This document shows positions 300 to 42,484 of a stretch of 64,000 nucleotides of DNA, piece by piece; the first letter of the stretch is position 1, and each line of letters starts with the position of its first letter. The translations under genes were made by a program, and so were the position numbers. Source of the stretch: Rhodosorus marinus CCMP1338 (Eukaryota; Plantae; Rhodophyta); NCBI GenBank assembly GCA_029953675.1, contig JAMWBK010000006.1, forward strand, positions 1-64,000. Reading direction: 5' to 3'. Under the pieces are notes generated by a model. The model was not told where the DNA came from. It saw nothing but the letters and a program-made list of their open reading frames with translations, and ran no database searches.

Positions 300-3200
300 T
301 TGTGATCCTTTAATATCTCCAGTAGTAGGGCCTACTATAGCACCACTACTATTGCGACGAACGAATGGGCTAACTGGAGGCTGAAAAAAACCCCGAGGGG
401 AAAAAAGACTAAGCGCGGCGAAGTACTCGCGCCTCCAACATCAAAAGGGCATTCATGCGCCGTACAGCAGTGAAAACTTAAGCGGGTAAACAACGATTGA
501 AGACGGTCAGGGGCGTTCGCGGAAATAACTCCCGAAGCCAGCGAGAACCAACAGAGTCCATGAACCCAAAGCACTCACTCATTCTTGTGGGTACTAAGCG
601 ATGTGGCTAGGGTGCCGAAGCACGAATGACCAGGGGAAGACAAAGCCCTCGCGTATTTGATCTCTTTGCGGCGTCTCATGTGCTGGCGGAGGCAGATCCA
701 CGGCGCTCCCCCGCAGCCGGGAGATAACGACTAGCTTGAGGGTTAGGAAACAGCAAGATCAACGTATGTGGTACGGCGGCTGTCGTCACAGGTGATCACC
801 AGGTCGGCTACACGGCGTTCATCATTTTGAAAGTCCGCGACGGGTAAAGGTTTCGCCACGTTCGATTTCCAGATCATTTGCCGGACTATAGGCCGAAGTT
901 CCCGGTATAACAGGTTCAAGATCCGTGTGTGGCGGCGGGTTCGAGCACCTTTCACCGCCGGGCAACTAGCGAGCAGGTGGGCGCCAAAATCTGCGTTGTC
1001 TTCAGTCTGAGAGCAGAGAGGGCACGACGAACCCATCTCTGTACGGCCAAGGGGGCTGATGTAAGCCGAGTGTATAAGCGCAGTGAAGTACGCACTTCGA
1101 AATCCGACAGTGTGAGTGGCGGAAAGGCTGGTACGGTCATGAGCCACTGAGAGCTAATAACCCCTCCAAGACTACGTAGGCGGGCGCGAGCGCGAGAAGA
1201 TGAGACCATCTGCGCGAGGAGTCGGCCATATGCAGCACGGTGCAAGTCCCAAGAAAGGATATTTTGCAGCGCATCCGTGCGTGCTTGAGCTCGGCTCCCA
1301 GCGCGCTGGGAATCATCAGGAGCATCAACTGGAACTTCTTCTTCTGCGGCAACCACTGGGTCAATCTCCCCTAGAACAGGTTCAGGCGCAGGACGAATCC
1401 TCAAGCGGAGTTCCTCGGAGAGCGGTTAAATACAGCTCGCCAGTCAGGAAGACGGGGTTGGAAACGGTTTCGGGGAGACTAGTACAGGAATTCAGGGCGG
1501 TTTGGAGCTCCAGAAACAAGTCTTGGGCGCTTTCCGGTACGCTGGGAAGCAAGACACCCCGCGAGAGGCTCGCCATCAAATTGCGGAACTTCGGAGATAC
1601 CCAAGCTGCTCAAAGTGGGAAGTGCGGGTTCCCAGGCCCCTACTGCGGCTGCAGGTTGGACTCACAACACGATTGCAGAGTGCCCAGTCCCCCTAATCGC
1701 AATGGGAGGCCTACCTGGGCGCGCACAACATCACAGGTGGGTCGCGGCAGAGCGCTCAGCTCTTTCATCGAGAAAAAATACCCCAGGTCACGGAAACTTT
1801 CAGCATCCGCACGAGTGGCCAACCACGGGCCCCAATGAGTTGGAAGTGAGCGAAGCCAATAGGTTAACCGCTGGCTGCAACAATACCGAAACAGCAACAA
1901 CGAGCACTGGAGAAAGCCCGGAGGTAGCCGTCGAAGCTCTGCAACCAGCTGTCTGTGCTAACCGAGGAGCTGCAGCAACTCGCCTTCAACGAAGGACGGC
2001 GACCCGTAGGGGATGCCTATAAGTGGACAAAACCAATCCGGTCTCCAAATATCCTGGAACGACGCAGGTACCTGCCGCTCTTGTGCAGCTACACCTCCCC
2101 AGTAGAACGATTTGTGATGACACCTCCAGGGTCAACCCGCGAAGCCAAGGAGCGGAGACGATCATAAGCGAGTGCTAGAGTATCAGGGGGCCCCAGGAGG
2201 CACACGTCGTCGTGGTATGCAACCGTACGAACCTGCGGGAATTCGGAGCGAAGACAAAGCAAGACGAGTTGTAGTCCACAGGCATGTAGGAAAGGGGACA
2301 AGGGATCACCCCGTTGTACCCCCTGTGCGCGCCGCAAACGTGTGTGAGGAAGCGCCAAGGGTGTCATAGGTAGCCCTAATGACCAAGCGGAGAATAAAGT
2401 CTACTAACAAAGGGAAAGTCTACAGGGAAGACTTCGCGCACCACGTGCATGAGAGCCGGACGAGAGACGCGGTTGAACGCATTGGTAAAATCTACAGAGA
2501 GGAGCCCAGAATCTGGGGAGTACGCCATTTCCGAACGGAGTAAAACAGACAACAACTTCACAGCCACCACGATAGCCCACGCCTAACTGCACGTGCCCAA
2601 AGAGACGGGTGGATTCGGGAACCAGGATTTTCACTAACCATCGCGCCGCCAATTTGCGGACCACCTCAACCAGGCCAATAGGGCGAATAGCAGGGCCTGA
2701 GGCCGTGTGGCCGGGCTTCGAAAGCAGACACAACTGTAACGCCTGACCAAGAACTACGCACACTCACAGATGCTGGGATCACCATTCACAAGCGCTTCTG
2801 GACCACCCACGCCAACGCCTTCAAACCTTCATCACTTAAGAAACGGAGAGATATTCCACCTGGCAGCCCCGAGGGCCCTGGGGAAACGGCCCTTCGGAGC
2901 ATCATGAACCAACTCACGCACTGCCTCCAGATTGACTCACCAACCGCGCACTGGGATGTGGCGCGGCGCGGTACTCTTCCAATACTGATTCAAACGAGGG
3001 GTCCCAAGGGGAACCTTCCGGTGGGAAAGAGCAAACGGAGCGGTGAAGAAAGATCATCATCGGAGTATGGAACCACAGGTTGCCGCTGCTGGAGGATCCT
3101 GGCTGCCCGCCGCAGATCACCGCCTGCCACCGCGTGACGCGCCCGATTCTGTCGAGAAGACCTAAAAGCTGAGGGAGCACTAGGAGACTATTAGTGCCAG
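300..3200 (-). mobile_element. Degenerate, 5'-truncated CRE-like non-LTR retrotransposon, family B (copy B1)
   Basis: Broken minus-strand ORFs give RT motifs (AIRPIGLVEVVRKL, QLGVGYRGGCE, VDFTNAFNRVSR, GVQRGDPLSP, AYHDDV). They are followed by a CCHC knuckle (CPLC...HLLASC) and an RLE domain (RHT...VADL...YVDLAV). Many stops and frameshifts; ends are approximate. Confidence 0.88.
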
Positions 3201-3599: not shown

Positions 3600-6500
3600 A
3601 CGCCTTGTTGCCGACCTAGTGGTGGAGTTGCGGGGCCTTTCCTATTTGGGTTGGGTTTGGTCGATTATTCTCTCGGTGCGGTTTCGATATTGGTGGTGCA
3701 ACGTTTCCTTGGCGGATTCCCTCAGGATGGTAGGGATGACTCCGCACTCGACGGAGCCTCCTCCCAAGGAGGCACTGCCAGGTGGGGGACTCCCGTGTTC
3801 GCCCCCAGCTGCGGCACGTTTTCTTCCGAGGTTGACTTGGAAGGCGCTTCTAAGTACCCAGGCGCGTTCACTTATCTCCGCTGTCACCAGCCCGATCACG
3901 GCTGCGAGTGATCGCGGAGTGCTCCCTCAGCTCACCCAGAAGCTAGGTGGGCTGGAATCGGGATTGGCAGCTGGCCAGGTCAAATTCAAATTCGGACGAG
4001 AATTTGAATTGCCCCAGAGTGGCAGCGTTGGCTGAAGGCAGTCAACATCCGGTCAATCAACATGAACCTGTCCCGGGACAGGCGAGGGCTGTTGCTTTTG
4101 CGCGGGACAGTACGACGTTGGGGAGCGGCAGGCTGCCAAAACGCGCTTCAGCGCTCGGGGACTCGAGGTACGGTGGTGGTGACTGTGCGGCAACCGGTGT
4201 GGAGGAGACTGCAGCTGTGGACTTCCCTCTCTTGACCAGCTCCTCAGGTCGTCACCAGCTCCCGGCTACTTCGGGGCACGTGGTGGCCGCAAGGGGGCGC
4301 TTCGTACGCATCAGTCTTGCGGAAGGGCACCACTGCCACGACGCGTAACGGCGGCTATGCTCCGTTTCATACCATCTCGCGAGCCTCAGGATGGACCTGT
4401 GGAGACCACTCTCCAATTTCTGTGGGTGCGAAATGTCCGGCCCCAGACTACACGAGGACAGGTTCCGTCTATGCGAGACTTCCGGGACACTTTTGCGGAA
4501 TCGTTAGGGTGCAGCAGGGGGTGATTTCTTCTTCGCAAACTATGAGGGCCGCGATGTGCTGTTTTTAGTCTCCGCAATCCGCCGCCAAGTACCTGGAGGT
4601 CTTGCTGGCGAAGCCTACTGAGCAGTGGCCTGAGAGCGCCCGGTGCGGCTGCGCTGCAACCCGCAGGTGGTTTCCGCACTTCGATTTTGACCGTTTCTCG
4701 GGCAATTTCCTGTCTCCGGGAGAAACGGCAGGGCTCTCTGAGCATGAGAGCAGCCGTGAAGGCGGCAGCGATCCATTGGCTACGGATTCAGCGCCTTGAG
4801 AGGATCTTGTTGGCGCGGTTCCGGTCGTGGCCTCGTCACCTGCGCATGGCGGTTTCCAGTTTCTTCGATCTGGAGAGGCGACTTGTGCTGACTTCGCGCT
4901 ACAAGACAGAGCTGCAGCGGGTGGGGATTTTGGAGGGCTCTGCTTCCAGCACTACTTCCAGCGAGAGTGGTGTGAGGCAGGGGAGCAGACTGAGGGCATG
5001 GCGGGTGGAGGACGCCCAGGTTACTTTTGCTGAAGCCCGCGGGATCCGTTCCGCGAGCCTCGCGGAGTGGGAGGCTCACGACTTTGGTGCGGATAGTGTA
5101 AGAGAGCGAGGACCGACTCCCCGGGTCTAAGTGGGGAGAAGCACGATTAGCGCTTCCAGGCACGGGCTGCGAGGTCGCAGCCTATGGATCTACAGTCTTA
5201 TGTCCTGGAAGGAGGGCGGAGACTCAGCATTTGGCGTACGCGTTTTCGGAGTTGGCTCCGGCGGTGGATTTCTTTGGAAGGAGGCTCGCTTCCCTCCGTG
5301 GGGGCATTCCCCCAGTCGTCCTTCCTCGTGGAGACCTTCTGGTAGCTGGAACCATTCTCGATTTCATCTTCACGAGCCTGGCCTCGCAACATTCGGGACA
5401 CAGTCATTTGGGTTTTTCTGGGGGTCATGCCGCGCATGATTCTGGCCCCCATTCACACATCATCGGAGCGCAGATGGCGAGTACGAGACCGACTGGCCCT
5501 GTTCTTGAAGGGAGACTTCGAAGTACTACAGCGCAGCTATTTGGCGTCGTCAGCACCATCCGCCTGTCGGACTCGGCATGGCACAGCGTCGCCCGTGCCA
5601 GCTCGAGTACAGAAATTGGCAGCAGTGGGCGATTTAAGTCGAGCGGCGCGGGTTTTGAGGGCCAGGCGCCTGTCCTCCCTACGATGATAGTCTCGCCCAG
5701 ACGGTGTCGTCTTTGTTCCCTGAGTCCGACGTGGATTTGTCCCCTGAATTCGAGGTATTCTTGGACCGTCCGGAGTTGGCCAGGTTTCGTATCGATCTGA
5801 CGCTCAGTGAGTCTGACCTGGAGGATTTGCTTCGTACCTCGCGTCGGGGACGCTGTCCTGGACCCTCCGGACTAAGAACAGAGCTATTGCAGGCCCTGAG
5901 CCAGCCTGGCCAGAGCGCGCTTCTGAGAGATCCTTAACAAGTTGTTCCAGGGCGTATCGGGTGCGTCCGCGCCATGTGGGAACATCTCCGGCAGGTACAG
6001 CTTTGCTTGCTCACGAAACCTGACCACCAGCCGGCCCACCCGCGTCTCCGGCCGATCGGGATGGTGGAGGAGCCTACGGAAGTTAGCCGGGAGGTGGCTG
6101 GTGCCAGCGCCTTCGCCAGCGCGTCACAGCTTTTATGGCGCCCTTGCAAGCAGGGGGTGGGATTTTCTGGGGGCTGCGAACTGATCACCCATGGGATCGA
6201 GCTAGAACGCGCCAGTAGGCCGGAGTGGGGAGTCTTGGTGGCTGATTTCCGGAATGCATTCAACAGCGTGTCGCGGACGCATGCGCCAGAGGTGCTCCGA
6301 CGTGTGTTTCCGGAGTAAGGGCCGTTTCTATCGGGTATTTACGGAGGGGAGAGCCTCCCCTACTTGACAACGGAGGGCACTGTTTTTCAAGCACATACTG
6401 GCGTCCAACAAGGCGACCCTTGCGGACCTCTTCTTCATGCCTGTGCCCTACAGCTCGTACTTTTACGTCTTTCGACTGAGGTCTCGGATCTTCGAATCTG

Positions 6501-8335
6501 CGCGTACCACGATGACGTAACATTGCTGGGCACCCCTGACACCCTGGTTAGGGACTGACCGCGATCGAAGCGATTGCACGTCGCGTCGGTTTGACTGCGG
6601 AAACAGAAAAATGTCGCTTTCTCCCCCGAGGGACGTGTCGCTGAACTCTCTGCCACCCACTCTGCGACTAATCAGCGCGAACGTGAAGGGTTCGAACACC
6701 ACGGCGTCGGATTGGGGACTGACAACTTTGTCCAAGCATCCTGCGAGCGAGTTTTGGCACGGCACAAGCAACTCACCGACGCCATTGAGCACCTACCCGA
6801 CAGCATGCTGCAATCGGCCTGCTTGCTTTCCCGCTTTTGTGCCGGTCCCAGACTCAACTACTGGTTGCGCAGCCTGCCTCCAGCTTGGGGCTCGTGGATC
6901 GCGGCTAAAGCCGACGAAATGACCCTGCAACACTGGGGAACGCTCTTGGATGAGCCCCTCGATCTTGAAGCTCGTTCCCGACAGGGACTTTGTTCGTGCA
7001 CAGATCGCTCTACCGTTGCGATTAGGGGATTCGGCGTCGCAGACCGTGGGCTGGCATGCTCGCCAGCGGCGGTTGCCTCCTGGGCTACCGCGCTGCGAAC
7101 GTTGGTGACCTTCCGGATGCGAAGTGCCCGCCTCTTGGCTCGAGCTTTGACCAACGAGGATCCAGTGACCCTGCCGCCCCCGGCTTTGACAATTTATGAT
7201 ACCTCAACACGCGTTCAGGAGGTGCAACGCCGTGCCGGACGCAAATAGGTCCCGCTTTCGTTCCTGGAGGGAGCTGTTATGGGGACGAGCTGAAGCGATT
7301 GGAGGATTGTCCCCTCGACCGAGTTCTTGCCGATGACGGAGAAGCTAGCCCCGGGTCCCCTGTTGCAGACTACCCGGGTTTGAGCCGATTGTGGAGCTCC
7401 CGCACTGATGTGATTCAACATAGCCTCACCTGGGGCCAACACAGTGCTGCCTACACAGTCATGCTCAATTCTCCTCTCACGCCGCCTACCACTGCCGCTC
7501 GTCTCCGCGGCATGGGAGGCCACCTCTCGCACTTCCAGGTTAACCACTCTACCGTCGTCATTGAGTCATCGTCTCGATGCTTTCCAGTTCCGTTCTGCCG
7601 CACGCATCTATCTCGGTTTGGGTTACAGGCTCTGTGGCACTCTAATCGGCCGTCTTTCTGTCAGGGATGAGAGAGCTTGATTGACGCTTGTGGGCTACCA
7701 CTTCCTGGGTTCCTGCGGACTGTTGCGAGGTCTCCGGCCGCAGGCGTCACACTCGCCTCAAGCACATCCTCAGCGAATTTTTGACTCGGATAGGGCATAC
7801 GGTTGAGGTTGAGTTTGAACCGCCCAGATCCATTTTCGACTCTGCACCGCCCCGTTGTATAGCCGATCTCCTCGTCTCCGACGCTGCTGCCAGACGCGCT
7901 CAACATATGTGGACCTTGCGATTACCTGCCCCGTGGCCAGCGCCCACCTCACCGCAGCCGCCTGCCGCCGGGGGCCGCGGCTTCAGCCCTCTTCGAAGAG
8001 TTAAGGGAACGACGGTATGCTGAGAGCATGGGCCATTCTGTTTGTACTGAGGGTCGCTCTCACCGGTTCCAGCCATTCATTGTGGAAAGCTTTTAACACG
8101 TCGATAAGTCTGGTTTCAGGAGTGGTTGCGGAAATGTTTTGCTGAGCATCCTACTGAATATTTGGCGCTCTTGAGGCGTTTAAGTGTCTCCCTTTGGCGA
8201 TATTCCAGCGACATGCTTTCCGAGGCGCGCCATCGGCGCCTGGGGTTGCATGCTTCCCTCCCTAGTTATTAGTTCATCTTCACGCCTTGCGTAGCGCTTC
8301 AGGCCATGCTAGTAAAGTCCAGTAAAGTCCAGTGG
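3600..8335 (+). mobile_element. Degenerate near-full-length CRE-like non-LTR retrotransposon, family B (copy B2), with ORF1 remnant
   Basis: RT pieces: CPGPSGLRTE, LRPIGMVE, QGVGFSGGCE, ADFRNAFNSVSR, GVQQGDPCGP, AYHDDV, RFCAGPRLNYWLR. RLE pieces lie at 7600-8300. An ORF1-like segment (AAAIHWLRIQRLERIL) lies at 4690-5130. Multiple stops; 5' end approximate. Confidence 0.88.
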
Positions 8336-8339
8336 TGGC

Positions 8340-9289: not shown

Positions 9290-9790
9290 GGTGAAGAGCG
9301 ATGCGCAAACCCAGGCGCGATGGGCTCCTCGACACTTATGATTGCCGCGCGTCCGGCACCTATCTCCCTTCTGCCGCTCTCCGCTGGGGGCAGTAGCTTC
9401 CGTCCTTCGCCGCAGCAAGGAACGATGGTACGCCGAGAGCATGGGCAGCCTTTCCCAGGAAGGTTCGGCGGAAGGGCAACAATGGCGGACGCTAATCGAC
9501 CTAGTAACTTGGAATACGCTACTATAATTTTGGCCCTGGCTTCTTAGCTGTATACTAGCCGAGGCTCCTCAATGGCGCCTTGACTTGCAAGCATTTGTCT
9601 TCACTATCTTTCGCGCTACGCCCTGAGTCGCCCGTTGACGTTGTGTTCGTAAAAACAACGCCGAACTACCTGTAGTTTATTCTCCGTTGGAAGTTAAGTA
9701 GTCTTCCATGATTCTAAGAGCAATTGCGAATCCCCCGGCTTCTGCAGAGGAATGAGCGTGTTTATAATTCGGGGACATCCTTGACGCATA
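9290..9790 (+). mobile_element. Short, more diverged 5'-truncated family B 3' fragment with 3' UTR (B4)
   Basis: Matches the family B tail (KERWYAESMGSL, ...ggcgccttgacttgca...). Its 3' end runs into degenerate C-strand telomere-like sequence. Confidence 0.7.
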
Positions 9791-9846
9791 CCCGCTAACC
9801 CCACTCCCGCGACTAACGTACTTACCCTGGAGCGGTGAAGTCACCG

Positions 9847-10223
9847 TAACGTAACCCCAGACTAACGTAACCCCAGACTAACGTAACCCCAGACTAACGT
9901 AACCCCAGACTAACGTAACCCCAGACTAACGTAACCCCAGACTAACGTAACCCCAGACTAACGTAACCCCAGACTAACGTAACCCCAGACTACGTAACCC
10001 CAGACTAACGTAACCCCAGACTAACGTAACCCCAGACTAACGTAACCCCAGACTAACGTAACCCCAGACTAACGTAACCCCAGACTAACGTAACCCCAGA
10101 CTAACGTAACCCCAGACTAACGTAACCCCAGACTAACGTAACCCCAGACTAACGTAACCCCAGACTAACGTAACCCCAGACTAACGTAACCCCAGACTAA
10201 CGTAACCCCAGACTAACGTAACC
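9847..10223. repeat. Tandem array of a 16-bp telomere-like repeat (CCCCAGACTAACGTAA)n, G-strand GGGGTTACGTTAGTCT; ~23.5 units
   Basis: Directly visible near-perfect array with one 1-nt deletion near 9991. It is strand-asymmetric (G4 run on the minus strand) and contains GGGTTA. Degenerate units lie at 9795-9827. Telomeric function is inferred. Confidence 0.95.
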
Positions 10224-10301
10224 GCGTACACTTTACTGAAGAACTCCCTATTGGAGCCCATTAAGAAGCAATAAGGATCCTATTGGTCAGCAAAGAAACC
10301 C

Positions 10302-13300
10302 CTAATGGGTTGTGTGGCTACGTTCTAAGATAGGGACGATGTCATAGTCTGCTTCGTCGACACGACGTGCCTGGGTGGCAAGGATAGCGTTTCCTTTCCA
10401 CAAAGTGCGGTTCAAGATCGCCCGAGCCTCACTTACTTGCGTTGCCCGCTGATCCAGGTGTATAGTCGCTTCCTTGAGGAACTCACTCGCTTGTTGTCCC
10501 ATCTGCCCAAATGTTTCCAGGCAGAAGGGGACGAAGATGTCGTCGTTATGTTCTCCGATACTGTCACGGTATTTGGACTCTTTAAACTTTTCCGCTTTCC
10601 GTGCCGCATACCCGGTCTCCCAAGACGCTTTGTGGAGGTGTGTTCTTTGCAAAGGCGAGGTCACCTTCACATCGATCACGTAGAGCTTGCCTGTTCGTGG
10701 GTGTCGGGCTAGAATGTCAGGCCGAAGCCGACTGCCTTGGTAGTGTCCGGTCGGTTCTATTGTCACTTCTAGTCGCCATTGTCTCAGCACTGTCGCCAGG
10801 GCGTCCCTGACCATGTTATGCCGAATTGTCCAACTGCCGGTAGAGCTGGTGCAGTGGTGAAGGCGTTGAATGCCTGCAGCGTCGTGTGGTTGGGAACATA
10901 TCGTACACGTACCAAGTATTCGTTCCACCCGGCAGGGGTAATCCCAACAGTTGTCGAAGGCTCAGGTTCAGTTCTCCGCTACTTAGGCCGCGTCCGTGTT
11001 TCCTTGGCAAGTCTCGCAGCCAAGTACCCCTCCTGATCCCTTGCAGGAGCGTATTCGCGCACGTGCCGTCTCGCTGATCTCCGCGTTCTCCACCATTTCC
11101 TCGAATGCCCGTCGGTGACTCCAGTTGGAGAGGAGTTTTTGGGTTGAACCGATCAAGGGCCTGTCGGGTGGTGTGTGCGGGTTCTCTGCTTGTTCTTGGC
11201 TCTCCAACGATTGCCATTCTGTTAGGCGGAGTATGGGGGCCGGTGTTCCTCGTGCCAGGCAGCGTTTTGAGTGGAGGCTCGCTTCGATTAGTTGTGCTCC
11301 AAGTTGATCCGTCGAGTGGAGCAGGGGTCGAATGTGATGGTGCTCGGTCAGGTTCGTCGATGTGCAGGCATCGAGTAGCGCTCCTAGGTGGCTAGATCCA
11401 GTCCAATTGAGCTTCAGAGTCTGTCGCCAACTGCTGAAGAAGGCGAGGGGTTGTATTCGTGTTCTCATCGCTAGGCCTGCGCCACCCCATCGGCAAGGGA
11501 GCTGGATCTGCGCTTCGACCACGTCTTTTGCGGGTCCTGTGAGGCCCTGGCCTTCGAGGAGCGAGCCGCACAGTTTGTCGAGTTCCAGGAGCGAGATGCG
11601 ATCGGCTTCGCGTGCGAGATTGGCTCCGTATTGTAGGGCGAGCGTGCGTAGAGCAAAGTCTAGACGCGGTCCCGGTGCGCAGTAGCGGAATAGGCACAGT
11701 TTAATTGGTAGCTCAGTGGTCGGTAGACGGATGACCTCTTGGACGAGTTTTTCATGTTCTCGTTGTAGCTTCCTGTTCGCGTCTTGGACGTAGGTCCGTG
11801 TGCCAATAGGGATGGAATAAAGTTGGATTCCGTCCCGGGTGACATGTACGTCGGGAATTTCCCTGTTGACGAGTCTGGTCGTCGGCAGTTGGAGTCCAAA
11901 AAGCTCGCATTTCGTCCTTTGAAGTTGTGCGCCTATTTCGGGGAGGTGGTGCTCGCTCCAGTGTAGCGCTTCTTTCACGTCCTTCAGAGGGCCAAGTAAG
12001 GTGAGGTCGTCGTGGATTGCGCTAAGGGTGATCCTCGGAAACCGGTCTCGTAGTGCTCGTAGGAGTGGGGAAAGGGCGAGCGCGTGTAAAAGCAGGTCCC
12101 AACGGATCGCCTTGTTGGACTCCAGTCCAGGCTCGGAGCTGGAGCCAGTCATCGACATCGCTGTCTCGCCATCCGAATTGGCGTGGGGCGCTCTCGCCTC
12201 GTGGTCCGTAGCTCATTGTCATAAGCGACTTCAATTCGGGGAAAGCTAGCTCGATGATACGGTTTGCGAGGCGTCGGTCGATTCTGTTGAACGCGTTTGC
12301 GAGATCAAGTTTGAGGAGCACGTCATTCGGGCGCGCTGCGAGGTGGGCTTCCGCGAGGTGGATGGCGTGTTCGCAGCCGCCGCTGACCGAGATGCCGAGT
12401 TGTTCCGGGAGCAGAAAGTCGCGAAGGGGCGTGGCGACAGCGCGAAGTGTCCATTGGGTGACGGCCTTCCGCAGTACCTCAGGAATCCCTAGCGGGCGTA
12501 GGCGAAGAGGGTACCCTTGTCTAGCTTCGGCAGACGTTCGCTTGTCTTTCGCGAGGAGTCGGTTGCTGCGCATGGCTTCGAGAAACACGTCAGGGAAGCT
12601 CTCCGGAGTGGTGGCAAGCTTGCGAAGGAAGCGTACAAGTACCGGTTGCGTTGTCATGGTGAGACTTCGCAGATGTTCGGCTTTGAGTCCACTCGGCCCG
12701 GGGGCTGTGGCGTACGGTAGGTGTTCCAGCGTTGACAGGAGGCTCTCGTCAGAGGCCAAAGTCGGGTCCCATATATTGCGTTGCAGTCCGTTGAGCTTTG
12801 CCTGTAGGGCGTCTTCAAGCTCCGAGGAGAGCGTTGCGGCCTCGTACTCAGGGAAGAGCGTAGTCAGAACGCGCCAGGTGGCAGGAGTCTTCGAGGCAAG
12901 ATCGGTGGCCAGTAGGAGTTGGCTAGACTGGGACATACGTTGAGCTTTGGCGAGTTGTAGGGCTCGTTTCTGTCGGTGGCGGGTCTGAGGCGGCGGAGGT
13001 ACGATACACTTGGTGTCAAGGGTTTTGCTGTGAGCAGTAAGGTGTTCCCACACCGTGGAGAACCTTCCGTCCATAACGGCGAGCATCTGCGCAGAAGGGG
13101 CCAGGTCGCCTGTGTAGCCGAGTGCGAGACTGGGGAGAGCGAAGATGAACAGGCGTGACAGGTTCGGCGCTGACGTATCAAGGGCAAGTTCCAGGGCTTT
13201 CGACATGAGATGGTTCCAGCGTGTTTTCAGGTTATCGGGGACGAATTGGCGAGTAGGCGTCGGAGCCTGAGTCAGCTGCCACCAGCGGTTGCCATTATCG

Positions 13301-13458
13301 GTTACGTTGAGAGTGAAGTCGTGCAGAGACGAGAGCCAGGCGTTCGAGTCGGTCTCGAAGAGTGACTGCGTCGAAGTGGGAGGTCGTTGGCGACGAGCAC
13401 GAGCACGGCGGGATGAGCGAGAGCGGTTCGGAGTATATTCGTCTGAGGAGCTGCTCAT
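10302..13458 (-). CDS. ORF2 of A1: reverse transcriptase + CCHC zinc knuckle + restriction-like endonuclease (~1051 aa after correcting three 1-nt indels)
   Basis: RT motifs: APGPSG, LRPLGIPEVLRK, QLGISVSGGCE, LDLANAFNRIDR, GVQQGDPLGP, IHDD. Knuckle: CTIC...HHC. RLE: RHN...RPD...IDVKV...KESKY. Frame breaks at ~12090, ~11030 and ~10928, each in a homopolymer. Confidence 0.9.
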
Positions 13459-14974
13459 GATTGAGTCGACGAGAGGGAGTCGGGCGTGAGGTCGTCGACG
13501 GCGTTGGCAGGCTTAGGGCGCTTAGTGGGTGGAGCCACTTGTCTCTTGTCTTGGGCCGTCGAAAGTCCTTGCATCGGCTCTGCAGGGGTCACTGGTTGAT
13601 CGCTAGTGGTGGAGGGGTCAGGCTCCGAGTCTAGTGGATCACGGGCTGTCGCGGCAGGCGTCTCAGGCGTGTTGTCCTCCCGAGCGGCTGGGACTTGGGC
13701 AGAATCAGCGCTATGCGTAGTCGCTGCGAGGGGTTCCGCACTCTCCTCTCCAGTGCCGCCGGTTGAGGGTCAGCTACCCGGGTTCGGTCCAGAGAGCGTG
13801 GCTCTCTGCGCTCGGTTGTTGTCGAGTGCTCTGGAAGCTCAGGGTCGGAGAATGGCACGCGCAGGCAACTGTCGGGTGCTCGTTGAGCGTGAGCGTGGAG
13901 GCTGGCCAGGGTGCGATCGAGCTCGGCCCTGACGTGGCCCAGGAGTGCCTCTCGGTTGTTGGGTGGGAGACTCCTGCGATTTGTAACAATCCGCTGGATC
14001 CGTCGGTAGCGGAGCAGGTTGTGGATCAGTGCAGCGCGGGGATAGTCTGCCGGTTGGTGACGGAGCTTTTCCCTCATGCTCAGGTATTCGTGTGACGTTG
14101 GAGAGAGCTTGACAGCTTGGATACGTTGATCAGGAGGCAGGTGTGCTCCTCTGGTGGGTTCGAAGGCCCCTGCGTTGGTAGCGTCGCGGAGTAGTTGGAA
14201 GGCGGTATGATGAGCGATGACGTGTACATGATGATCAAAGTAGTCCAGCTGGAGCAGCGAATTTTTCTGAAGGCCGGCTAGGCGCTCGATATCCCAAGCA
14301 TGATGGGCCTTGCTTCTGGTGGAGTCCCGAGGTCGAGCATTGAGTAGCACAAATGCATCAACGTCCTTCTGGCTCTGGTACTGCAGCCCATGAATGCTCG
14401 CGAAAAACGAGCGATTGGCAGCTGCTGGGGTCTGGTTGGCGCGGACACGTGTCGTCCAGCTCATTGGTTGAGGTTGAGCTCGAGTCCTTGTCCGTGCTTG
14501 CTCATTGGCCGTTGCGAGATCTGGGAATGCATTGGAATCGAGATCACGTGTCTCGGGAGATCGCGGGCGGGCTGCTGCAGTGGCGTAGTTTGCTGGTTCG
14601 TAGACAGGGAGGGGGCGTTGTGCCCTCGGGGCAGCTTTGTGTGGCGTCGTAGTCAGATTGTGAAGGAGTTGAGCCTCGGTGCCATTGGCGTGTGCCTGGG
14701 CTAAGAGACCCATAAACCGCAGCATAAGCCCATTGTAGAGCGGGGTCTTATGCTTGGGCGCGTCGAGATGCAGCTTCAGCGCTCCGCAGCTCAGGTCAAT
14801 AGCCAAGGGAGTAGGTACGTCGTTGTCAAGTGCAGATGCAGTTGTAGGCTCAGAAACAGGTACGGGCAGAGGCTCGGGTCCGTCTGCCCTCAGGCTAACG
14901 GCCGGGAGGTCTTCCATCGTTGCGTCTGTGCAAAAGCCCCCCCCATCCGGAGGCACGGGCTCGAGAGTAGTCAT
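13455..14974 (-). CDS. ORF1 of A1, unknown domain with acidic/Pro-rich tail and NLS-like PPTKRPKP (~506 aa after one 1-nt correction)
   Basis: ATG at 14974, open to ~13770. A single added C in a CCC run joins it to a frame ending TGA at 13457-13455, which overlaps the ORF2 ATG. Homologous segments occur in other copies. Confidence 0.7.
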
Positions 14975-15042
14975 ATCACTCGATAAGCGTTCGTGGAAAG
15001 AATGAAAGTGTAACTTTATCACCACGATAAACTCCAAAGTCC

Positions 15043-15087
15043 AACCCCAGACTAACGTCAACCCCAGACCCCAGACTAACGTAACCC
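15043..15087. repeat. Short telomere-repeat tract (variant unit, 7-bp CCCCAGA duplication, canonical unit) at the A1 5' junction
   Basis: Sequence reads aaccccagactaacgtc aaccccaga ccccagactaacgtaaccc. Confidence 0.92.
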
Positions 15088-15570
15088 GCGCAGTATGCAG
15101 ATTGCTTCCAGAGAATTGAATTCAGATTACATGAAAACCCGAATGACTGGGCTTTGACTTTTAGTTGTTATGAATATTGTACTAGCTCAAATCGTCGTGC
15201 AGGTTCATCGAATCCAGTTTGAAGCTGCCATGAATCCATCCAGTCTCCGTCTCCTGTATATTCGGGCAAATTCGAGGTGAGTGATCTTCGGAAAGGCCCT
15301 GCTTCAGGCTCCATGCAAGGACACTGCTGGCGTCATCTGGTTGCGTCGGTGCTTTGCGGATCAACTTGGTGCTTGGCACACTTCCAATCCTTTCTTAGTT
15401 TAGCCCTTTCGTGGAGCACAGCCATCCATGTCCTTCCGAGGGTGTGTTCCTTTCGTGGAGTGTATTGCTGTAGGTAGCCCTCTAGTAGAGTTCTCGACTC
15501 CGGCCAGGGGGTTCCACTTTGTTATGTAATAAGTTATACTGGACGTCTTGATACTACGTTCTTCTTGGGT

Positions 15571-15663
15571 AGGCAGCTGCCCAGTAAAGTTTACGGTTAC
15601 GTTAGTCTGGGGTTAGACGTAGTGTTGCGCTGCAGTAGGCAGCTGCCCACTAAAGCTTACGGT
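15571..15663 (+). mobile_element. 93-bp insertion: two minimal family A 3'-end fragments separated by one telomere unit, GGT duplicated
   Basis: Absent from the paralogous site at 31761-31779 (cttctggggttgcggcacc). The fragments match the A2 3' UTR at 25586-25640. Confidence 0.92.
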
Positions 15664-17229
15664 TACGGCACCTTCAACACAAGTGAGCGAAGCACGAGCG
15701 ACGCTCAGCCGGTCCCGGTGGAAAGGGAATGCACTGCTTGCCACCCAGGCTCGCCGAATTGACGAAGGGAGCTATGACATCGTTCCTCTAGTAGAACGTG
15801 GCACGCAACCCATTAGGGTTGTTTTTAGCGCGTAGGTAGATTCCTTATTCGCTCTTGATGGGCTCCACTAGGGAGCTCTTCGGTAGAGCATTCACGGTCA
15901 CAGTTAGGTTATTTATTTTGGACGTCGCATCAGGACCAGATCATCGGATCGGAACCAGTTCAATCCGTCGTAGGTCGGCTCTTGGGTAAATTCAAATGGA
16001 CATGATTCATGGTCCATGGATCACTGCTAGACGCGTATATGACAATGTGCTTGAATTTTGGGGAACTATTTCGAGCCCAGCTGAGGCGAAAGCAAGTAGC
16101 TGCGCTGTTGGCTGTGAGCGCATTGGCTCTACCTTTCAGTGGGAATAATCAACAGGGGATTTTTTTTTTTTTTCAACTTCCGGTGGAGCAGACGTGCAAC
16201 TCAAAAGGCCCAGGTGGACCGCTTGGGACAGGAAGAACCCACCCTAGCCCATATCACCCAAAACCGGAGGTTCCCACTAACCGTTGTCGAATCCGCATCC
16301 CACGGAAATGGAACCCAATGGGCTACCGCACAGCAAGAGTTCCGTAGGTTGCCGAGCTCGGCAACCCACACTCTCACCTAGGGACTCGCGCTCAAAAGCT
16401 CGACCGTACGTGTCCGAAGGTTTAACCGAGGACGGATCGGACACGGTTGAGCTCTATTTCGACCCACAATCTCGATCTCGTCCCCTGTACGTGTCTAGAA
16501 TAAGCATGCCAGCACCAAGTCTTGACTAGTCTGGGGTTACGTTTGCTTTTGGCTTCCACGATGCGAACCTGTGGAACGTCAAGAGCGGCGAGCTCTTGGA
16601 CTCGAGCAGAATCTCAGTTTGTGCCAGTGCTGAGTTTACGCTAATCTGGGGTAATTACCTTCACGAGAATTTCTTTTCGCAGACGAGATGCAGAGACCGC
16701 GGGACAAAATAGTCATAGATGAGATATAGCAATCAACAGAATCACCCACTCACTGGCGGGTCGAATACAGAACCCATCTAGTCTCAGTTGAAGATGGCGA
16801 CTGGTGTTTATACCGCTGCTTTGCTGAACTAAGTAAGCGTGAGCTTGGGGGGCCAGGGTGGTGCTCCTGTCACTTAAGCAACCCCTCGTGTCCCCTGAGG
16901 TTAGCCCTTTTTCCTGGAAAGTGCGTCAACGTGAACTCTGGATTGGAACACTCAAATTCTTAAGCCGAAAACTCCGCCAGTGGTCGCTGGCAACCTCAAA
17001 ACTCAGCTCAAGCAAAGACTCAACCCCTCTAACCGGTTCGTCTAGTCCCGGCTGCAAGTGTTCAAACTCCCGAACCGAGCACGTCCTGAAAGGTCAGACA
17101 GCCCACACATCTGGATTTTTGTCTCCGAGAAAAGAGGAATACAAGACGTTACCTGAATTGGAAAACCGGGGCTATTCCATTATGGAGAGTAAGATGTGAA
17201 TGCAGGGCTACGAGTTTTAGGAGGCTACT

Positions 17230-21931: not shown

Positions 21932-22770
21932 CCGCAGAGAGAACGCTATTGAGCGAGAGCCTACGATACTGCTCGGCGGACCAGTATCCTCGTTATTCTA
22001 TTGACAAATGGCTTCTTTTTCGTCGCCGGCCGTGGCTCTTAATGTAATTGCTAATCATCTTTGTCCCAGGTTGTCACTTCGAATGTACATTTTTGGCTAT
22101 CCGCCAGGCAGAGGTTGATTCTTTGCTCTTCTTTTGCCGTGGCACGGGGAATGAACGGTGCCTACCGTCGAAGTATTGTCGCCTTTGCACCTTCCGAGGA
22201 GGCCCCAGCCAAACGGCGTTTATTGGACAATTGGAATCTGCTAGAAGGCCAGGGCCTGGATGCAACCATGAGCACGCCAACGTTCGGAATCCAGATAAAA
22301 GGGGACTCAAAGCCAGTGCGCTTCTTGAAGAGGTATTCCTCATCGTATGCCTCGCTTTCTAAATAAGCACGGTGTGGAAATAGGAAAATAAGAGCACTTG
22401 CGACCCGGACGGCTAAACTACTATCAGAGTGACCACGTACCTGTCCAGGGATTTGTTGATGTTGCGTCCTCGAGTTAAATTGGTCCGGAGTTAGGTTCAG
22501 ATACTGCTGGTCGTGCGCTGGTGCCCGATGGAGAAAGCCAAACTGACCCGGGGTTGCCCTTCGAGAAGAGGTCCCAAGTTTCTGTTTGACGGCTGAAGAC
22601 TTATCATGAAGCTGATTATATACATATACGGAACTGGGCCTTAGAGGACCAGCAAAACGTTTGACAGTGGTGATCGTGCCGTGTGCAAAGGATACTGAGC
22701 ATTTTGTCTATACAGTCGAATTTTACGGAGATTGACTAGGATCGTGATCGCCGACATTGAAAATCTGCCT

Positions 22771-25640
22771 TTCAGATGCAGCTCGAAGCCTACAGGCCAC
22801 CGAAATGGCACCTTTTACCGCGGCTACGTGGAGACAACTACAAGCGCTCTTTCCCAACCCGGCAGAAGGTGACATACCAGACGAGATTGCACACGCCCTG
22901 CAATCTTTGCTCGCTCTGAATACCGAAACACTAAAGCGGCGGTGGGATTCAAGAAAAACTGCCGACGAGGGCCTCATGTCGATCGTGGCACGTCTTCCTC
23001 AGGGCAAGAGCCCAGGTCCTAGCGGTATCCGAGCGGAACACCTCCAAGGTGCAACTCAACAGACGCAAGTGGCGTTGATTCGTGTATTGCGACAACTGGC
23101 GACCGCTCCTGAGAAATTTTCCCCGGCTCTGACCCGCGCCCTTCGCAGTAGTCGACTCCTGCCGTTCGCGAAGCCTAAGAAGGGTTCAGTGCCGCAGGAA
23201 CATCCCGGAGTTCGCCCTATCGGAGTACCAGAAGTTTTGCGCAAGGTAGCAACGCAATGGACTCTTCACGCGGTTATGGACAGGGTGCGTGAGCTGCTGG
23301 TGCCCTTACAACTGGGTATTGGAGTAAGTGGCGGGTGCGAACGCTCACTTCACTTGATCCAGGCCCATTTGTCATGCGAACCCGATTCGGTGGTCCTTCG
23401 GCTAGACCTAGAGAATGCCTTTAATCGCATCGACCGACGCCTTGCCAAGCAACTGGTGGACGAACACTTGCCGGAGCTTGCACCAGTGTATCGACTTGGC
23501 TATGGAAGCGACAACGCGGACTCACCGACGCTCTGTGGCTGGCGATCTTCCCCGGGACAGAACGAAACCGACACCTCTCGCCTGACTCTCCAAGCAACTA
23601 CAGGAGTCCAACAGGGAGATCCACTGGGGCCGGTGCTACATGCACTATCCCTGGCGCCCTTTCTAAGAGCGTTGCGAGCCAAGTTCCCCAACGAAACGAT
23701 TGTTGCTATCCACGACGATATCACGATTGTCGGGCCGCTACAAGCCTTGAAGGCATCCCGGGCATGGGGAAAAACTGTGCTCCCCTCTCTTGGAGCACGC
23801 CTGCAACTCGGCAAGTGCACTGTGTACGGGCGAACACTGACTACCACGCGAGTGGTCAATCATGAGATTCCTGGAGTGCAAGTGACCAGAGACGGAGTCA
23901 CCATCCACTCGATACCGATAGGCAGCCGAGAATATATCGAACAGGAGTGCCGGGGGCTGCAAAATAAGCATGAGAAACTCTTTGAGCAAATTGCCAAGCT
24001 CCCACAACCGGAGCTTACGACGCAAATTGCCCTCTTCAGGTTCTGTGCAGAAAGGCGACTAGACTATGTGCTACGATGCCTCGCATACGAGTTTGGAAGA
24101 AATCTGGCACGCGAGGCCGACGTGATGACCAGATATCATCTGGAAATTCTATTCGGAGGCCTCGCTACGACAGCTGTAGAGGACGATGAGTACGCAGAGC
24201 TGATCTCGGACCAAATCGCTCTGCCCTGCCGCTGGGGAGGTTTGGGTTTCGCTACTCGAAAGCGCGTCCAACCCATCGCGTTTTACTCGTCATGGAGAAA
24301 CACCTTCCGGAACAATGAAGATGAATGGCCATACCTGACTGAACTGGACTGGACTTTACTAGCATAGGCTGAAGCGCTACGCAAGGCGTGAAGATGAACC
24401 AATAACTAGGGAGGGAAGCATGCAACCCCAGGCGCCGATGGCGCGCCTCGGAAAGCATGTCACTGAACTAGAGCGGGAGGTTACGGCAGAACGCTCACCA
24501 GACACATACGAGCCGACGGAGCAACGATGGTCGACTGCACAGCTGGCAGAACAGATCTGTGCATCGTCGCGAGCAATACAACGGAGGCTCGGACCAGAAG
24601 CCCCGCCGCGGATCTTGGCACTGACAACCCTGCAACAACCGCGAGAAACATCTCTTCGAAGCGCCCCGGGCGAGACTGCAGCTTGGAATAATGGTTCAAT
24701 ACAACAAACCCTCTCTCGAGAGGCACACCATTGTGCATTCCAAAAGCTGGTCACCAACCCACGAATCTCCCCTGAAAACCGAGCTCGAATACGGTCTGCC
24801 GCGGGATCCGAGTCGGGAGTCTGGCTGCGTGAAATACCAACGCTGACACCGAAAAAATTGAGTGCGGTTGAGATGCAGGTAAACGTTCGACAACTGCTGG
24901 GTCTGCCAATTCCGGGATTGCGCACCACCGAGAAGTGCACTAGTTGCCGGAGTAAACACGGAAGGACTGGGGTACAACGGTTTCATCACTGCCCAACATC
25001 AACTGGACTGTGGCAACGTCGGCATGACGAAATCTGCAGAGAGCTGACACGGTGGCTAAGGCGATGGAACTTCATGGACGTAGAGCAAGAACCCGAGGGG
25101 TACTTCGAGAACTACGGACTGCGACCTGATATCGTTGCTAGGCATCCGAGGACCAAACAAAGGTATGCGCTGGATGTGACGGTGGTGTCACCATTACAGG
25201 GAAAATATTTGCGGCTGAGCCAAGATGATAGCGGATACGCGGCGAGAGCTGCGGAGAAGTGGAAAATCGCTGACTACAAGGAAGCGATGGTGATCGAGAA
25301 ACCGGATGACAAGCTCATCCCGATAGCGATAGAGACGTTTGGGCGTACGGGGCAAATGGCACAAGAGTTCCTCCGCGACAGCTGCAAACACCTGCTGCAC
25401 AGGAGTGAGGAGCTGAGAGACGTGAGATCCCAGATAAACCGGCAACTATGGCGAGGTAACGCGGAGATAGCATTAGGCGCTTTGCGCGTGGACCAGCTGG
25501 AGAACCCGCTGGTGCCTGTTTTTTCTTTTGAACGTAGCATGAGACCCCGGTAGCGGGGTTCCAGAAAGTTTTTCCCTAGATAGGATTAGACGTAGTGTTG
25601 CGCTGCAGTAGGCAGCTGCCCAGTAAAGCTTACGGTTACG
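22771..25640 (+). mobile_element. 5'-truncated family A element (A2): RT-CCHC-RLE with one frameshift, complete 3' end
   Basis: SPGPSG, VRPIGVPEVLRK, LDLENAFNRIDR, GVQQGDPLGP, IHDD, CTSC...HHC, RHDE...RPD...LDVTV. Frameshift at ~24362 and stop at 25553. The 3' UTR ends GGCAGCTGCCCAGTAAAGCTTACGGTTACG. Confidence 0.93.
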
Positions 25641-25649: not shown

Positions 25650-26200
25650 TTAGGGGGCGAGGTGGTTGCCTACGGCCTGTCGCGGGAGATCATGCGGAGA
25701 TGGTGCAGAATTCGTAGTTGCGGCTCCACTTTCCCACATACCCGGTTTCCGGGACAACTCCGTAAGGCGTCCGGTGACGCCTTGCAGCTCTTGCGAGCTG
25801 TTGACCCGCGAGTACAGTTGAAAAACTGCTTTGTAGAAGCCTGTAACTTCGGACGCAGCGATGCCCAGGTCCTGGTAGCATCTGTCGAAGCTCCGCAGTT
25901 GATGCAAGAATGTGGCTGCCGGGTCGGTTGCGGCTGCAGACTCGGTCCATCTTCTTGCTTGAACATCGCCTGCTTGTGGTTCCGTCGGTGTCTCCTGCAC
26001 GTCGCCATCAGACTGGTGCTGGTGCCTTTGCAAACTTCCCGGGTGCCCGAGGGGTCCGGGCCCTGAACGACAAGAGGTTCGGGGTACGGCCCGCGTACCT
26101 CCCTCACAATCATCTTCGGACTCTCTTACGAACTTTCCTTTTGTCTTCCTTACGAACTTTTCCTTTTGTCTTCCCCAAACGCCTACGACCTAGATTAGCA
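25650..26200 (-). mobile_element. Probable 5' end / ORF1 N-terminal fragment of a family A-like element
   Basis: ATG at 26113 (VREVRGPYPEPLVV, resembling A1 VSLRADGPEPLPV), followed by a helical ORF after one frameshift. A 24-25-bp tandem duplication lies upstream (26135-26183). Similarity is weak. Confidence 0.45.
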
Positions 26201-26228
26201 ATAGAAGTAGTCGTTAGTCTAGGGTTAA

Positions 26229-26904
26229 GAAAAAAGAGGGACCAGTGGATTCTCCAACGGTCCACGCGCAAAGCGCCTAGGGCTATCTCGGCATTACCTC
26301 GCCAAAGTTGCCTGTTGATCTGCTATCTTACATCGCTCAGCTCCTCGCTCCTGTGCAATAGGTGTTTGCAGCTGTCCCGCAGAAACTCCTGTGCCATCTG
26401 TCCCGTCCGCCCAAATGTTTCTACCGCAATTGGGATGAACTTATCATCCGGGTGTTCTATCGTCATCGCCTCCTTGTAGTGCGCTTTCTTCCAGCTCTCT
26501 GCACATCTTGCTGCATATCCGCTCTCCGCCTCACTACATTCAGATACTTCCCTTTGAGAGGAGCCACAACCGTCACGTCCAGTGCATACCGTTGAAATGT
26601 CCTCGGATGCGCAGCAATGATGTCTGGCCTTAGCCCGCAGTTTTCAAAGTACTTCTCCGGCTCCTGCTCGATGTCCAGAAAGTTCCACCTGTTCAACCAC
26701 CTTGCGATCTCCGTGCATATCTCGTCATGCATACGTTGCCACAGGCCAGTAAGCGTTTGAGGAATTCACTGTTGGATCCCCAGTGAATACCTCAAACGCT
26801 TGTCGGTGGCACTCTCGAGAGAGAGTTTTTTGTATTGGACCGTCAAACGTTTGGTTTCCTTCTGCGTCCTCAGCTGTGCCTTGGGCTGACTCCTCAATCA
26901 ACTG
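26229..26904 (-). mobile_element. 5'-truncated family A 3' fragment (A3), RLE domain
   Basis: HDEICTEIARWLNRWNFLDIEQEPEKYFENCGLRPDIIAAHPRTFQRYALDVTVV closely parallels A2. The 5' junction abuts a telomere seed at 26905-26921. Confidence 0.9.
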
Positions 26905-26921
26905 CCAGACTAACGTACCCC

Positions 26922-27433: not shown

Positions 27434-27452
27434 CAGACTAACGCAACCCCAG

Positions 27453-28300: not shown

Positions 28301-28311
28301 CCCGAGACTAA

Positions 28312-28363
28312 CGTAAGCCGTAAAGGCTATTGGGGCAGCTGCCCAATAAAGGATACAGTTACG
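28312..28363. repeat. Imperfect inverted repeat made of two oppositely oriented family A 3' termini sharing the palindrome GGGCAGCTGCCC
   Basis: The plus strand reads gcagctgcccAATAAAggatacagttacg. The minus strand reads gcagctgccccaatagcctttacggcttacg-ttagtct. Confidence 0.75.
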
Positions 28364-42247: not shown

Positions 42248-42269
42248 GGGGTCGTTAGTCTGGGGTTAC
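42248..42269. other. Isolated telomere-repeat match in intergenic DNA (GGGGT-CGTTAGTCTGGGGTTAC)
   Basis: A 17-bp perfect match at 42253-42269, preceded by GGGGT (1.4 repeats with a 2-nt deletion). Function unknown. Confidence 0.85.
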
Positions 42270-42484
42270 CTGCCCTCTTGAAATGGGACTAACCTCCCAA
42301 TACGCTTGAAGGGTCTATTTACAATCATCCTTGTCTACACAGAGTGATCGACTTTGTGCTATCCTGCTCGCGCTCCACGCATCCAAGTCTCAATCCCGAA
42401 TGTACATGATTCAAAGGGCATGCAGGGCTCTCGCACGACCACCCACACACATCACGAGAACCGCAAGTCGAGGGAGCGTAATTC

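Follow-up and report, generated by a model that had tools for sequence, protein, structure and literature searches.

A 16-nucleotide candidate telomere repeat and an associated site-specific retrotransposon family in the red alga Rhodosorus marinus

Results

A 16-nt tandem array between two retrotransposons

The window analysed here is a 64-kb stretch of Rhodosorus marinus CCMP1338 (positions 1 to 64,000 of contig JAMWBK010000006.1, assembly GCA_029953675.1). Tandem Repeats Finder reported in it, at period 16, an array at 9847-10223 with 23.6 copies, 99% matches and 0% indels. The consensus is TAACGTAACCCCAGAC on the plus strand, and the minus strand carries the G-strand, GGGGTTACGTTAGTCT; no mismatch occurs in 22 of the units, whereas one A is missing from a unit near 9990. 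When up to three mismatches were allowed, the 16-mer matched the window 29 times against 0.28 expected from dinucleotide shuffles, none of which reached 29. Repeat finder and shuffle counts together confirm the description in the initial annotation of a homogeneous, strand-biased array of about 377 bp, the unit of which (G6 T6 A2 C2, 75% G+T) holds a single GGGG run and an embedded GGGTTA. The fold of the G-strand is unremarkable (z -1.4), and no dimers of canonical telomere repeats (TTAGGG, TTTAGGG, AATGGGGGG and others) were found in the 64-kb window.

The array lies about 9.8 kb inside the window and is therefore interstitial, flanked by two retrotransposon sequences whose sense strand is in each case the minus strand. 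It is thus a tract between two LINE elements and no chromosome end, although its unit is very probably the one that caps chromosomes in this alga, as argued below.

Retrotransposon copies in the window

On the right of the array lies LINE A, a 4.8-kb element (10224..15042, minus strand) recognised from its open reading frames (ORFs), a reverse transcriptase (RVT_1) domain, downstream motifs, a restriction-like endonuclease (RLE) profile and its 3' junction. Its minus-strand ORFs are near-continuous from 15061 to 10302, the reverse transcriptase being split by a frameshift between the ORFs 12022-13458 and 10983-12158, and the C-terminal CCHC and RLE region falling in the ORF 10302-10928. The 3' end, ...CAGTAAAGTGTACGC, meets the array at GG|GGTTACG. 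The repeat borders LINE A at either end, a tract at 15043-15090 lying beyond its 5' end, and the same holds for the counterpart of LINE A in contig JAMWBK010000007.1; read directly from the sequence, the registers on either side of the window copy fit a single split tract with a GGTT overlap. On the left of the array, translation and tblastn identified a 5'-truncated LINE fragment (9755..9846, minus strand) with the RLE motif VTVTSPLQGKY..., which joins the array through a GTTACG microhomology. Apparent degenerate repeats at 9790-9846 were rejected as repeats, being part of this LINE coding sequence with chance similarity plus the same microhomology.

LINE B (22767..25633, plus strand) is 5'-truncated and retains a reverse transcriptase and CCHC-RLE region; its 3' end is GTAGGCAGCTGCCCAGTAAAGCTTAC, followed by GGTTACGGTAACGGG. 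Its protein is 44% identical to that of LINE A, and its reverse transcriptase ORF comes closest to an MMETSP transcript, at 84%, and to the Rhodosorus marinus protein NDN08_004844, at 75%. Sequence comparison also showed an inverted partial copy of the LINE B C-terminal part (26228..26756, minus strand) and the remnant of a further element, LINE D, with reverse transcriptase and C-terminal pieces (893..2694, minus strand). The LINE C block with adjoining LINE debris (3619..8318, plus strand; reverse transcriptase at 5698-7101) has a counterpart of 95% identity at 7-11 kb from the end of contig JAMWBK010000007.1. Finally, a 5'-truncated LINE A-type 3' fragment followed by GGTCACAGTTAG lies at 15661..15907 (plus strand) and is present in both copies of a segmental duplication, the second at 31768-32011. 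LINE copies thus occur in the window in both orientations, and a sacsin-like host ORF is present as well, for which the protein database gave no R. marinus match.

The elements belong with the RLE-type non-LTR retrotransposons

The RVT_1 domain was matched in both LINE A and LINE B, and the best matches of both among solved structures (PDB) were L1 ORF2p and R2. Downstream of the reverse transcriptase, both elements carry the motifs CxxC...HxxC, RH(D/N), RPD and D-V-x-V, and an alignment of the C-terminal domain with 13 database relatives conserved the columns C, C, H, C, RH, E, (P)D, D-V-x-V and K. A profile of this domain matched R2 proteins over the CCHC-RLE region (9nl3_A, E 4.7e-11; R2Bm 8gh6_A, E 9e-6). 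The window LINE elements gave no match to an AP endonuclease domain (Exo_endo_phos). The ORF of 476 aa that lies upstream in LINE A was searched for a zinc-finger/Myb N-terminus; no Pfam domain was matched in it, although divergent domains could escape such a search. Since a reverse transcriptase is combined with a C-terminal CCHC-RLE profile match and AP endonuclease matches are absent, we assign the elements, on sequence grounds, to the RLE-type (R2-superfamily) non-LTR retrotransposons, a class whose members are mostly target-site specific (PMC4640811). A Penelope-like terminal element of the Athena/Coprina kind with a hammerhead-like end was considered and rejected: the reverse transcriptase is LINE-like rather than PLE-type, an RLE is present, and in place of a distal 5' end with G-overhang priming the orientation is the opposite one, the 3' end being distal and the sense strand lying on the G-strand.

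Insertion at a fixed register of the repeat

A scan for the 3'-terminal motif found seven LINE 3' ends in the window, at 10224 on the minus strand and at 15594, 15660, 15895, 25633, 28356 and 32000 on the plus strand. All seven continue on the sense strand as GGTTACG-type sequence (six begin with GGT and one with AGT): the full array follows LINE A, 21 nt follow the end at 15594, and stubs that merge into host sequence follow the other five, those at 15661, 15896 and 25634 being seen in both k-mer and motif scans.

What the target looks like before insertion can be read from the 7.7-kb segmental duplication (15091-22766 and 31290-38893, 93-95% identical). Copy 2 has the empty site CTTCTGG|GGTTGCGG, and copy 1 has in its place a retrotransposed insertion of 92 bp (15569..15660, plus strand; duplicate alignment and motif scan), composed of a 26-nt LINE 3' end, the 21-nt tail GGTTACGTTAGTCTGGGGTTA and a 45-nt LINE 3' end. 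The element therefore targets sequences similar to GGGG|TTACG, the insertion point being between GG and GG; pieces of the repeat can also reach non-telomeric DNA through retrotransposition. In the repeat itself, the LINE inserts at the fixed register GG|GGTTACG and in one orientation.

When the window was searched with 10-14-nt k-mers of the circular unit, in-register pieces were found at about ten sites besides the array. They include the 21-nt piece at 15595-15615, further pieces at 26905-26921 and 27434-27454, and a composite at 28305..28356 (plus strand) in which a 14-nt C-strand piece (28305-28318) precedes a near-palindromic LINE 3'-end motif and then AGTTACGATAGGCTCGGG. An isolated single unit with 17 matching nucleotides, its C-strand on the minus strand, lies at 16527..16547 (minus strand) and is present in both duplicate copies, the one at 32646 having diverged. 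Another isolated piece, GGGGT-CGTTAGTCTGGGGTTAC (42253..42275, plus strand; 17 matching nucleotides), lies between host genes and may represent either the insertion of a tail alone or one made during repair. Both 16527-16547 and 42253-42275 were considered as a telomerase RNA gene and rejected, each having 17 matching bases (the unit plus 1 nt); the diverged duplicate copy also counters that reading, as does the search of Rfam, which gave no match in the 64-kb window.

The short, irregular tract at 15043..15090 (minus strand, about three units) lies between the LINE A 5' end and the truncated left end of duplication copy 1. Copy 1 stops at this tract, whereas copy 2 runs on at 31290 into unrelated host sequence with a cupin gene and no repeat. 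The tract is probably the proximal remainder of the one into which LINE A inserted, and possibly also an old healing site; the comparison of 15090 with 31290 is compatible with an old healed break, making a weaker and not decisive case for de novo addition.

It had been proposed that such in-phase pieces cap truncation points in the way that telomerase-added DNA does. The pieces are indeed there, but the motif scan places most of them at LINE 3' junctions, and because these are site-specific LINE 3' ends, most of the in-window caps are junctions left by target-primed reverse transcription (TPRT). The duplicate alignment tells directly against the healing argument for 15595-15615, a piece that retrotransposition brought to a non-telomeric site.

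The same junctions raise the question of whether the 16-mer might be a product of the LINE rather than of telomerase, that is, a 3' tail or private satellite laid down by reiterative reverse transcription. The (TAA)n tails of the I and Dong elements are the model for a tail made in this way, and such an origin would fit both the 21-nt piece that came to a non-telomeric site along with LINE 3' ends and the several off-target insertions that bear GGTTACG stubs only. We know of no LINE with a 16-nt tail unit.

The repeat at the end of contig JAMWBK010000007.1

The comparison loci come from the same long-read assembly, GCA_029953675.1, in which one end of contig JAMWBK010000007.1 (2,212,799 bp) was inspected: positions 2,188,318-2,210,882 (locus L003) and the last 16,270 bp, reversed (locus L004). 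LINE copies in the window and in the CCMP1338 assembly are 93-99% identical; for the segments shared with L003 the values are 99.4% over 1.1 kb for LINE A and 95% over 4.7 kb for the LINE C block.

Positions 4-468 of L004 hold 29.1 copies of CCCAGACTAACGTAAC at 99%, a terminal array of 465 bp. The repeat reaches the first base of L004 and hence, L004 being reversed, the final base of the contig, and its G-strand runs 5' to 3' outward. The count of the 16-mer at contig ends, named in the initial annotation as a check on its proposal, thus gave at this one end 29 copies that terminate the contig with the G-strand outward. Further in, all sizeable repeat tracts in the last 24 kb (five of five) have their G-strand toward the contig end. 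On its inner side the terminal array is joined directly to a LINE A copy, the 3' junction of which is identical to that at 10223/10224 in the window; both long arrays, that of 377 bp in the window and that of 465 bp at the contig end, directly follow a LINE A 3' end. LINE sequence occupies the last ~15 kb of the contig, from about 2,198,100 on, and is uniformly oriented, its 3' end being distal; three non-LINE genes and some unassigned stretches break it up. When paralogues of NDN08_004843, a subtelomeric gene, were sought, the gene itself was the sole match.

About 3.6 kb inside the contig end, a LINE C copy is broken. It reads to ...TACCTGG and continues directly with GGTTACGTTAGTCT...; at the break the sequence is ...CCAAGTACCTGG|GGTTACGTTAGTCTGGGG..., where the two intact copies (window 4505-4690 and L003 12555-12740) have ...TACCTGG|AGGTCTTGC. 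Over a longer span the broken copy reads ...CCGCCAAGTACCTGG|GGTTACGTTAGTCTGGGGTTACGTTAGTCTGGGGTTAGTTTGTCTGGGG... and the intact copies ...TACCTGG|AGGTCTTGCTGG... The element is truncated on the side that faces the contig end, the break shares 4 nt with the unit (CTGG), the polarity is telomeric, and the units become irregular farther along. With these features, the capped break is the footprint of de novo telomere addition, that is, of chromosome healing. TPRT cannot explain it, because TPRT puts repeats after a LINE 3' end.

Identity of the repeat

We conclude with good confidence that GGGGTTACGTTAGTCT is the telomere repeat of R. marinus, as had been proposed from the window array; the proposal now draws on the terminal array of contig 7, the polarity of the tracts and the capped LINE C break. 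We further infer that telomerase is the enzyme that synthesises it.

If the 16-mer were instead a LINE tail, the contig would simply break within such a tail, and the identical LINE A 3' junction shared by the 377-bp and 465-bp arrays would find a ready explanation. This is, however, an unlikely account of the remaining observations. The repeat caps an internal LINE break, the downstream part of the element being gone, and not a 3' end; it also occurs at the 5' flanks of LINE A copies; and an outward G-strand is common to all the tracts near the contig end. Long reads should easily span 465 bp, so that an assembly break in an array of that length would not be expected, and the authors of the assembly scored telomeres on twelve contigs, six of them at both ends and six at one end or more, a count that implies about 18 telomeric ends among the 34 contig ends, although their text gives no sequence (PMC10250338). 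The unit itself, with its GGGGTTA core and 75% G+T, has the make-up of a telomeric G-strand.

A terminal repeat could also be kept up without telomerase, either by the LINE reverse transcriptase or by recombination between LINE-associated arrays, in the manner of retrotransposon-based or ALT-like maintenance. A LINE A copy does lie immediately inside the one end inspected, with abortive or template-switch structures at its junction, and there are precedents in the retrotransposon telomeres of Drosophila and in Bombyx, where weak telomerase coexists with SART/TRAS (PMC7265360). Yet we regard such maintenance as very unlikely here. In its observed orientation the element would need a C-strand 3' end, which a natural terminus would not provide; a healing junction that has 4 nt of microhomology and begins with irregular units is what telomerase typically leaves; and the fidelity over 29 units is very high, as a template RNA would give.

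Both long arrays start exactly at a LINE A 3' end, and repeat and LINE might also be coupled in their mechanism, in that the LINE machinery lays or seeds the arrays at chromosome ends as a telomerase-like activity encoded by a retrotransposon, or that a unit from the LINE 3' end (...TTAC|GGTTACG...) became the telomerase template. We think such coupling quite improbable. That the array is an ordinary minisatellite or an assembly artefact unrelated to chromosome ends, as the internal position of the window array could suggest, is scarcely credible: identical units occur at an independent contig terminus, at fixed-register LINE junctions and at a broken end, and the number of matches in the window exceeds the shuffled expectation by far (29 against 0.28).

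Discussion

The results presented here are best accommodated by a model in which telomerase and a site-specific LINE act on the same sequence. Telomerase would most probably synthesise the repeat on a template some 16 nt long that has a few further bases for alignment, and the junctions suggest a register in which GGTTACGTTAGTCTGG would be added onto ...CTGG; the two healing-type junctions start at (G)GGTTACG after ...CTGG or ...GC. In duplex telomere repeats, the RLE of the element may introduce a nick into the C-strand, with CC on either side of it. Since the element is always antisense on the C-rich strand, first-strand synthesis would be primed by a C-strand 3' end; once freed, this end could base-pair with the GGUUACG... 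at the tail of a transcript that reads through into the repeat, and so prime reverse transcription. Priming of this kind would account for a sense strand that always lies on the G-strand and a 3' end followed by GGTTACG... Each insertion would split a telomere tract, the distal part of which telomerase would re-extend, and older tracts would become buried by subsequent insertions and rearrangements, in an order of events that we reconstruct only tentatively. The 377-bp tract of the window may thus once have been terminal or near-terminal, and later insertions and the subtelomeric duplication could have buried it. Telomeres of Magnaporthe that contain MoTeR elements illustrate such internalisation, breakage and healing (PMC7367193).

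What would be new is an unusually long repeat of the telomerase type, found in a phylum whose telomeres are largely unresolved. Exact 32-mer and 21-mer searches with the repeat gave zero matches in metagenome, prokaryote-genome and viral collections, among which the R. marinus genome was not included. Literature searches with all rotations on both strands gave, among the 30 best-ranked of 180 papers, what look like incidental primer and sequence matches, none of them on telomeres, and the 16-nt motif is absent from the telomere reviews and database papers surveyed and from the R. marinus assembly paper. Telomere sequences of red algae outside the Cyanidiales have so far been essentially unknown, and a 2020 review calls red-algal telomere information "mostly missing or fragmentary" (PMC7046594). 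In three red algae, TRAP gave negative results with both the Cyanidioschyzon-type and the Arabidopsis-type repeat, Southern blots of Porphyridium gave no specific signal, and TRAP, dot blots and Bal31 digestion with canonical and Cyanidioschyzon-type probes failed in three red-algal classes (PMC3622300). A defined unit of 16 nt offers an explanation for these earlier negative results. For Bal31, FISH and TRAP experiments, the 16-mer can also serve as probe and reverse primer, and it supplies a specific seed of about 18-22 nt for red-algal telomerase RNA, with the predicted template core CCAGACUAACGUAACCCCAG or a rotation of it. So long a unit bears in addition on the co-evolution of telomere-binding proteins and templates. 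Finally, as far as the surveyed literature shows, the LINE family would be the first telomere-repeat-specific retrotransposon in Rhodophyta.

Long telomerase repeats are best known from budding yeasts (23 nt in Candida albicans, 25 nt in Kluyveromyces lactis and 16 nt in Candida glabrata), and other long units are those of Allium and Aspergillus oryzae, 12 nt each. To our knowledge, the 16-mer would rank among the longest telomerase repeats outside budding yeasts. Like the budding-yeast repeats, it is a long, non-degenerate, high-fidelity unit, G/T-rich with one G run, in arrays of a few hundred bp; in contrast to them, it belongs to a red alga (Archaeplastida) and not to the Saccharomycotina, and its GGGGTTA core resembles TTAGGG(G)-type repeats. 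The candidates put forward for red algae, AATGGGGGG in Cyanidioschyzon merolae, TTATT(T)AGGG in Galdieria and TTAGGG reads in Porphyra (PMC7046594, PMC3622300), likewise contain G runs and include non-canonical motifs, within the same phylum. The R. marinus unit differs from them in its length (16 nt, not 6-10 nt), in its unrelated sequence and in coming from another class, the Stylonematophyceae.

For the retrotransposon, a related LINE on a JGI contig from another organism shares the conserved 3'-end motif and has no 16-mer; at a second related locus, again from another organism, short (TAAACCC)3 tracts lie 4 kb from a related reverse transcriptase with no clear junction. Among established telomeric elements, SART1Bm of Bombyx mori inserts, like the R. 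marinus LINE, into double-stranded telomere repeats and not onto the end, at one defined nucleotide and in a single orientation, sense on the G-strand, and telomere-like bases in the 3' region of its RNA have been proposed to pair with the nicked strand (PMC7265360). SART1Bm is, however, an R1-clade element that has a poly(A) tail and carries its AP-type endonuclease at the N-terminus (PMC7265360), whereas the R. marinus LINE has a C-terminal RLE and no poly(A), telomere repeats following its 3' end directly. No known telomeric element is listed as pairing an R2-type endonuclease with a SART1-type orientation (PMC10088271).

In their enzymes, the closer parallels are MoTeR1 and MoTeR2 of Magnaporthe oryzae (PMC7367193) and GilM and GilT of Giardia (PMC10088271), which also carry both a reverse transcriptase and a restriction-like endonuclease. 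MoTeRs stand head-to-tail in telomeres, and the telomere tracts between them measure anything from half a unit to over 20 units; MoTeR relics that have become internal keep partial 3' repeats, and interstitial tracts and healing result (PMC7367193). They nevertheless belong to the CRE clade and have a target unit of 6 nt where that of the R. marinus LINE is 16 nt, and the MoTeR 5' end is always nearest the chromosome end, whereas in R. marinus the 3' end is distal. The Penelope-like Athena and Coprina elements and HeT-A and TART of Drosophila resemble the R. marinus LINE in being chromosome-end retroelements that lie amid telomere repeats or replace them. Unlike it, they are added to a free end, with the 5' end distal and no site-specific endonuclease, whereas the R. 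marinus family has the opposite orientation and a restriction-like endonuclease.

Retrotransposon copies, junctions and derivatives

The reverse transcriptase of LINE A, a non-LTR retrotransposon that lies beside the interstitial telomere-repeat array, is split by a frameshift directly after QQGDPLGP. The identical frameshift occurs in the window copy (12022-12158) and in the copy just inside the terminal array of contig JAMWBK010000007.1 (contig 7; 22045-22177 of L003, its segment 2,188,318-2,210,882), and the two copies are 99.4% identical. The common frameshift and the high identity suggest a defective LINE A lineage, presumably mobilised in trans until recently; alternatively, the shared frameshift may be a sequencing error present in both copies.

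A small mosaic separates the 3' end of the contig-end LINE A from the terminal array (positions 469-513 of L004, the reversed last 16,270 bp of the contig; JAMWBK010000007.1 about 2,212,287-2,212,331). It consists, in this order, of 23 nt of repeat (GGTTACGTTAGTCTGGGGTTACG), a repeat piece in inverted orientation (CAGACTAAC) and another 8-nt copy of the LINE A 3' terminus (GTGTACGC), at which the terminal array begins. A comparable inverted 11-mer (AACCCCAGACT) is found at the 5' junction of the same LINE A copy (L003 21441-21451). The mosaic looks like the product of abortive priming or template switching.

The 3' regions of the elements may include a motif that is complementary to the element's G-rich tail, since the sequence directly past the stop codon of the inverted partial copy of LINE B (TTAACCCTAGACTAACGACTAC in the sense orientation, window 26208-26229) matches the telomeric C-strand at 17 of 21 positions. 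The last codons of LINE A (AGAACGUAGCC) base-pair with the G-rich tail in the minimum free energy fold. Two tandem copies of a 25-nt repeat (CTTACGAACTTTTCCTTTTGTCTTC, window 26125-26174) also lie in the 3' region of the inverted copy of LINE B.

Two units of about 870 bp, 77% alike, stand in tandem at window 7456-8323 and 8339-9203. In reverse complement, each unit joins two separate stretches of the LINE B locus (24338-24465 and 26920-27327), a structure that suggests a non-autonomous element derived by deletion. This composite is present three times near the end of contig 7 (L003 ~15480-16930 and 19067-19744).

Surrounding sequence

A direct segmental duplication of 7.7 kb (window 15091-22766 and 31290-38893, 93-95% identity) is limited in its first copy by a telomere-repeat piece on the left and by the exact 5' truncation point of LINE B on the right (AAATCTGCCT|TTCAGATGC). 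Host sequence surrounds the second copy, with a cupin gene at 28641-29454. No Pfam match was obtained for ORFs within the duplication.

Single repeat units, matching over 17 nt each, occur at window 16527-16547, where the unit is found in both duplication copies, and at 42253-42275, between host genes. No recognisable LINE end adjoins them, and insertion of a tail alone or a repair insertion could explain them; as a telomerase RNA template, both were ruled out as too short.

To the right of the LINE-rich part lie host genes, all on the minus strand, that encode an EF-Tu-like GTPase (40406-41528), a CUE-domain protein (50332-51876), a sacsin/DUF3684 protein (52738-55665) and a VASt-domain protein (62182-63975). 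The sacsin-like ORF (975 aa) has protein database matches only ~30% identical, mostly from fungi. None is an R. marinus protein, so the gene may be unannotated in the public assembly.

Outside R. marinus, a distant relative of the LINE reverse transcriptase (37% identity) was found at 5721-5992 of L002 (ENA assembly ERZ25070293, ctg2991l). No junction between that element and telomeric tracts is definable at the locus; two copies of a ~230-bp repeat lie 4 kb from the reverse transcriptase, each with short (TAAACCC)n telomere tracts of the plant type.
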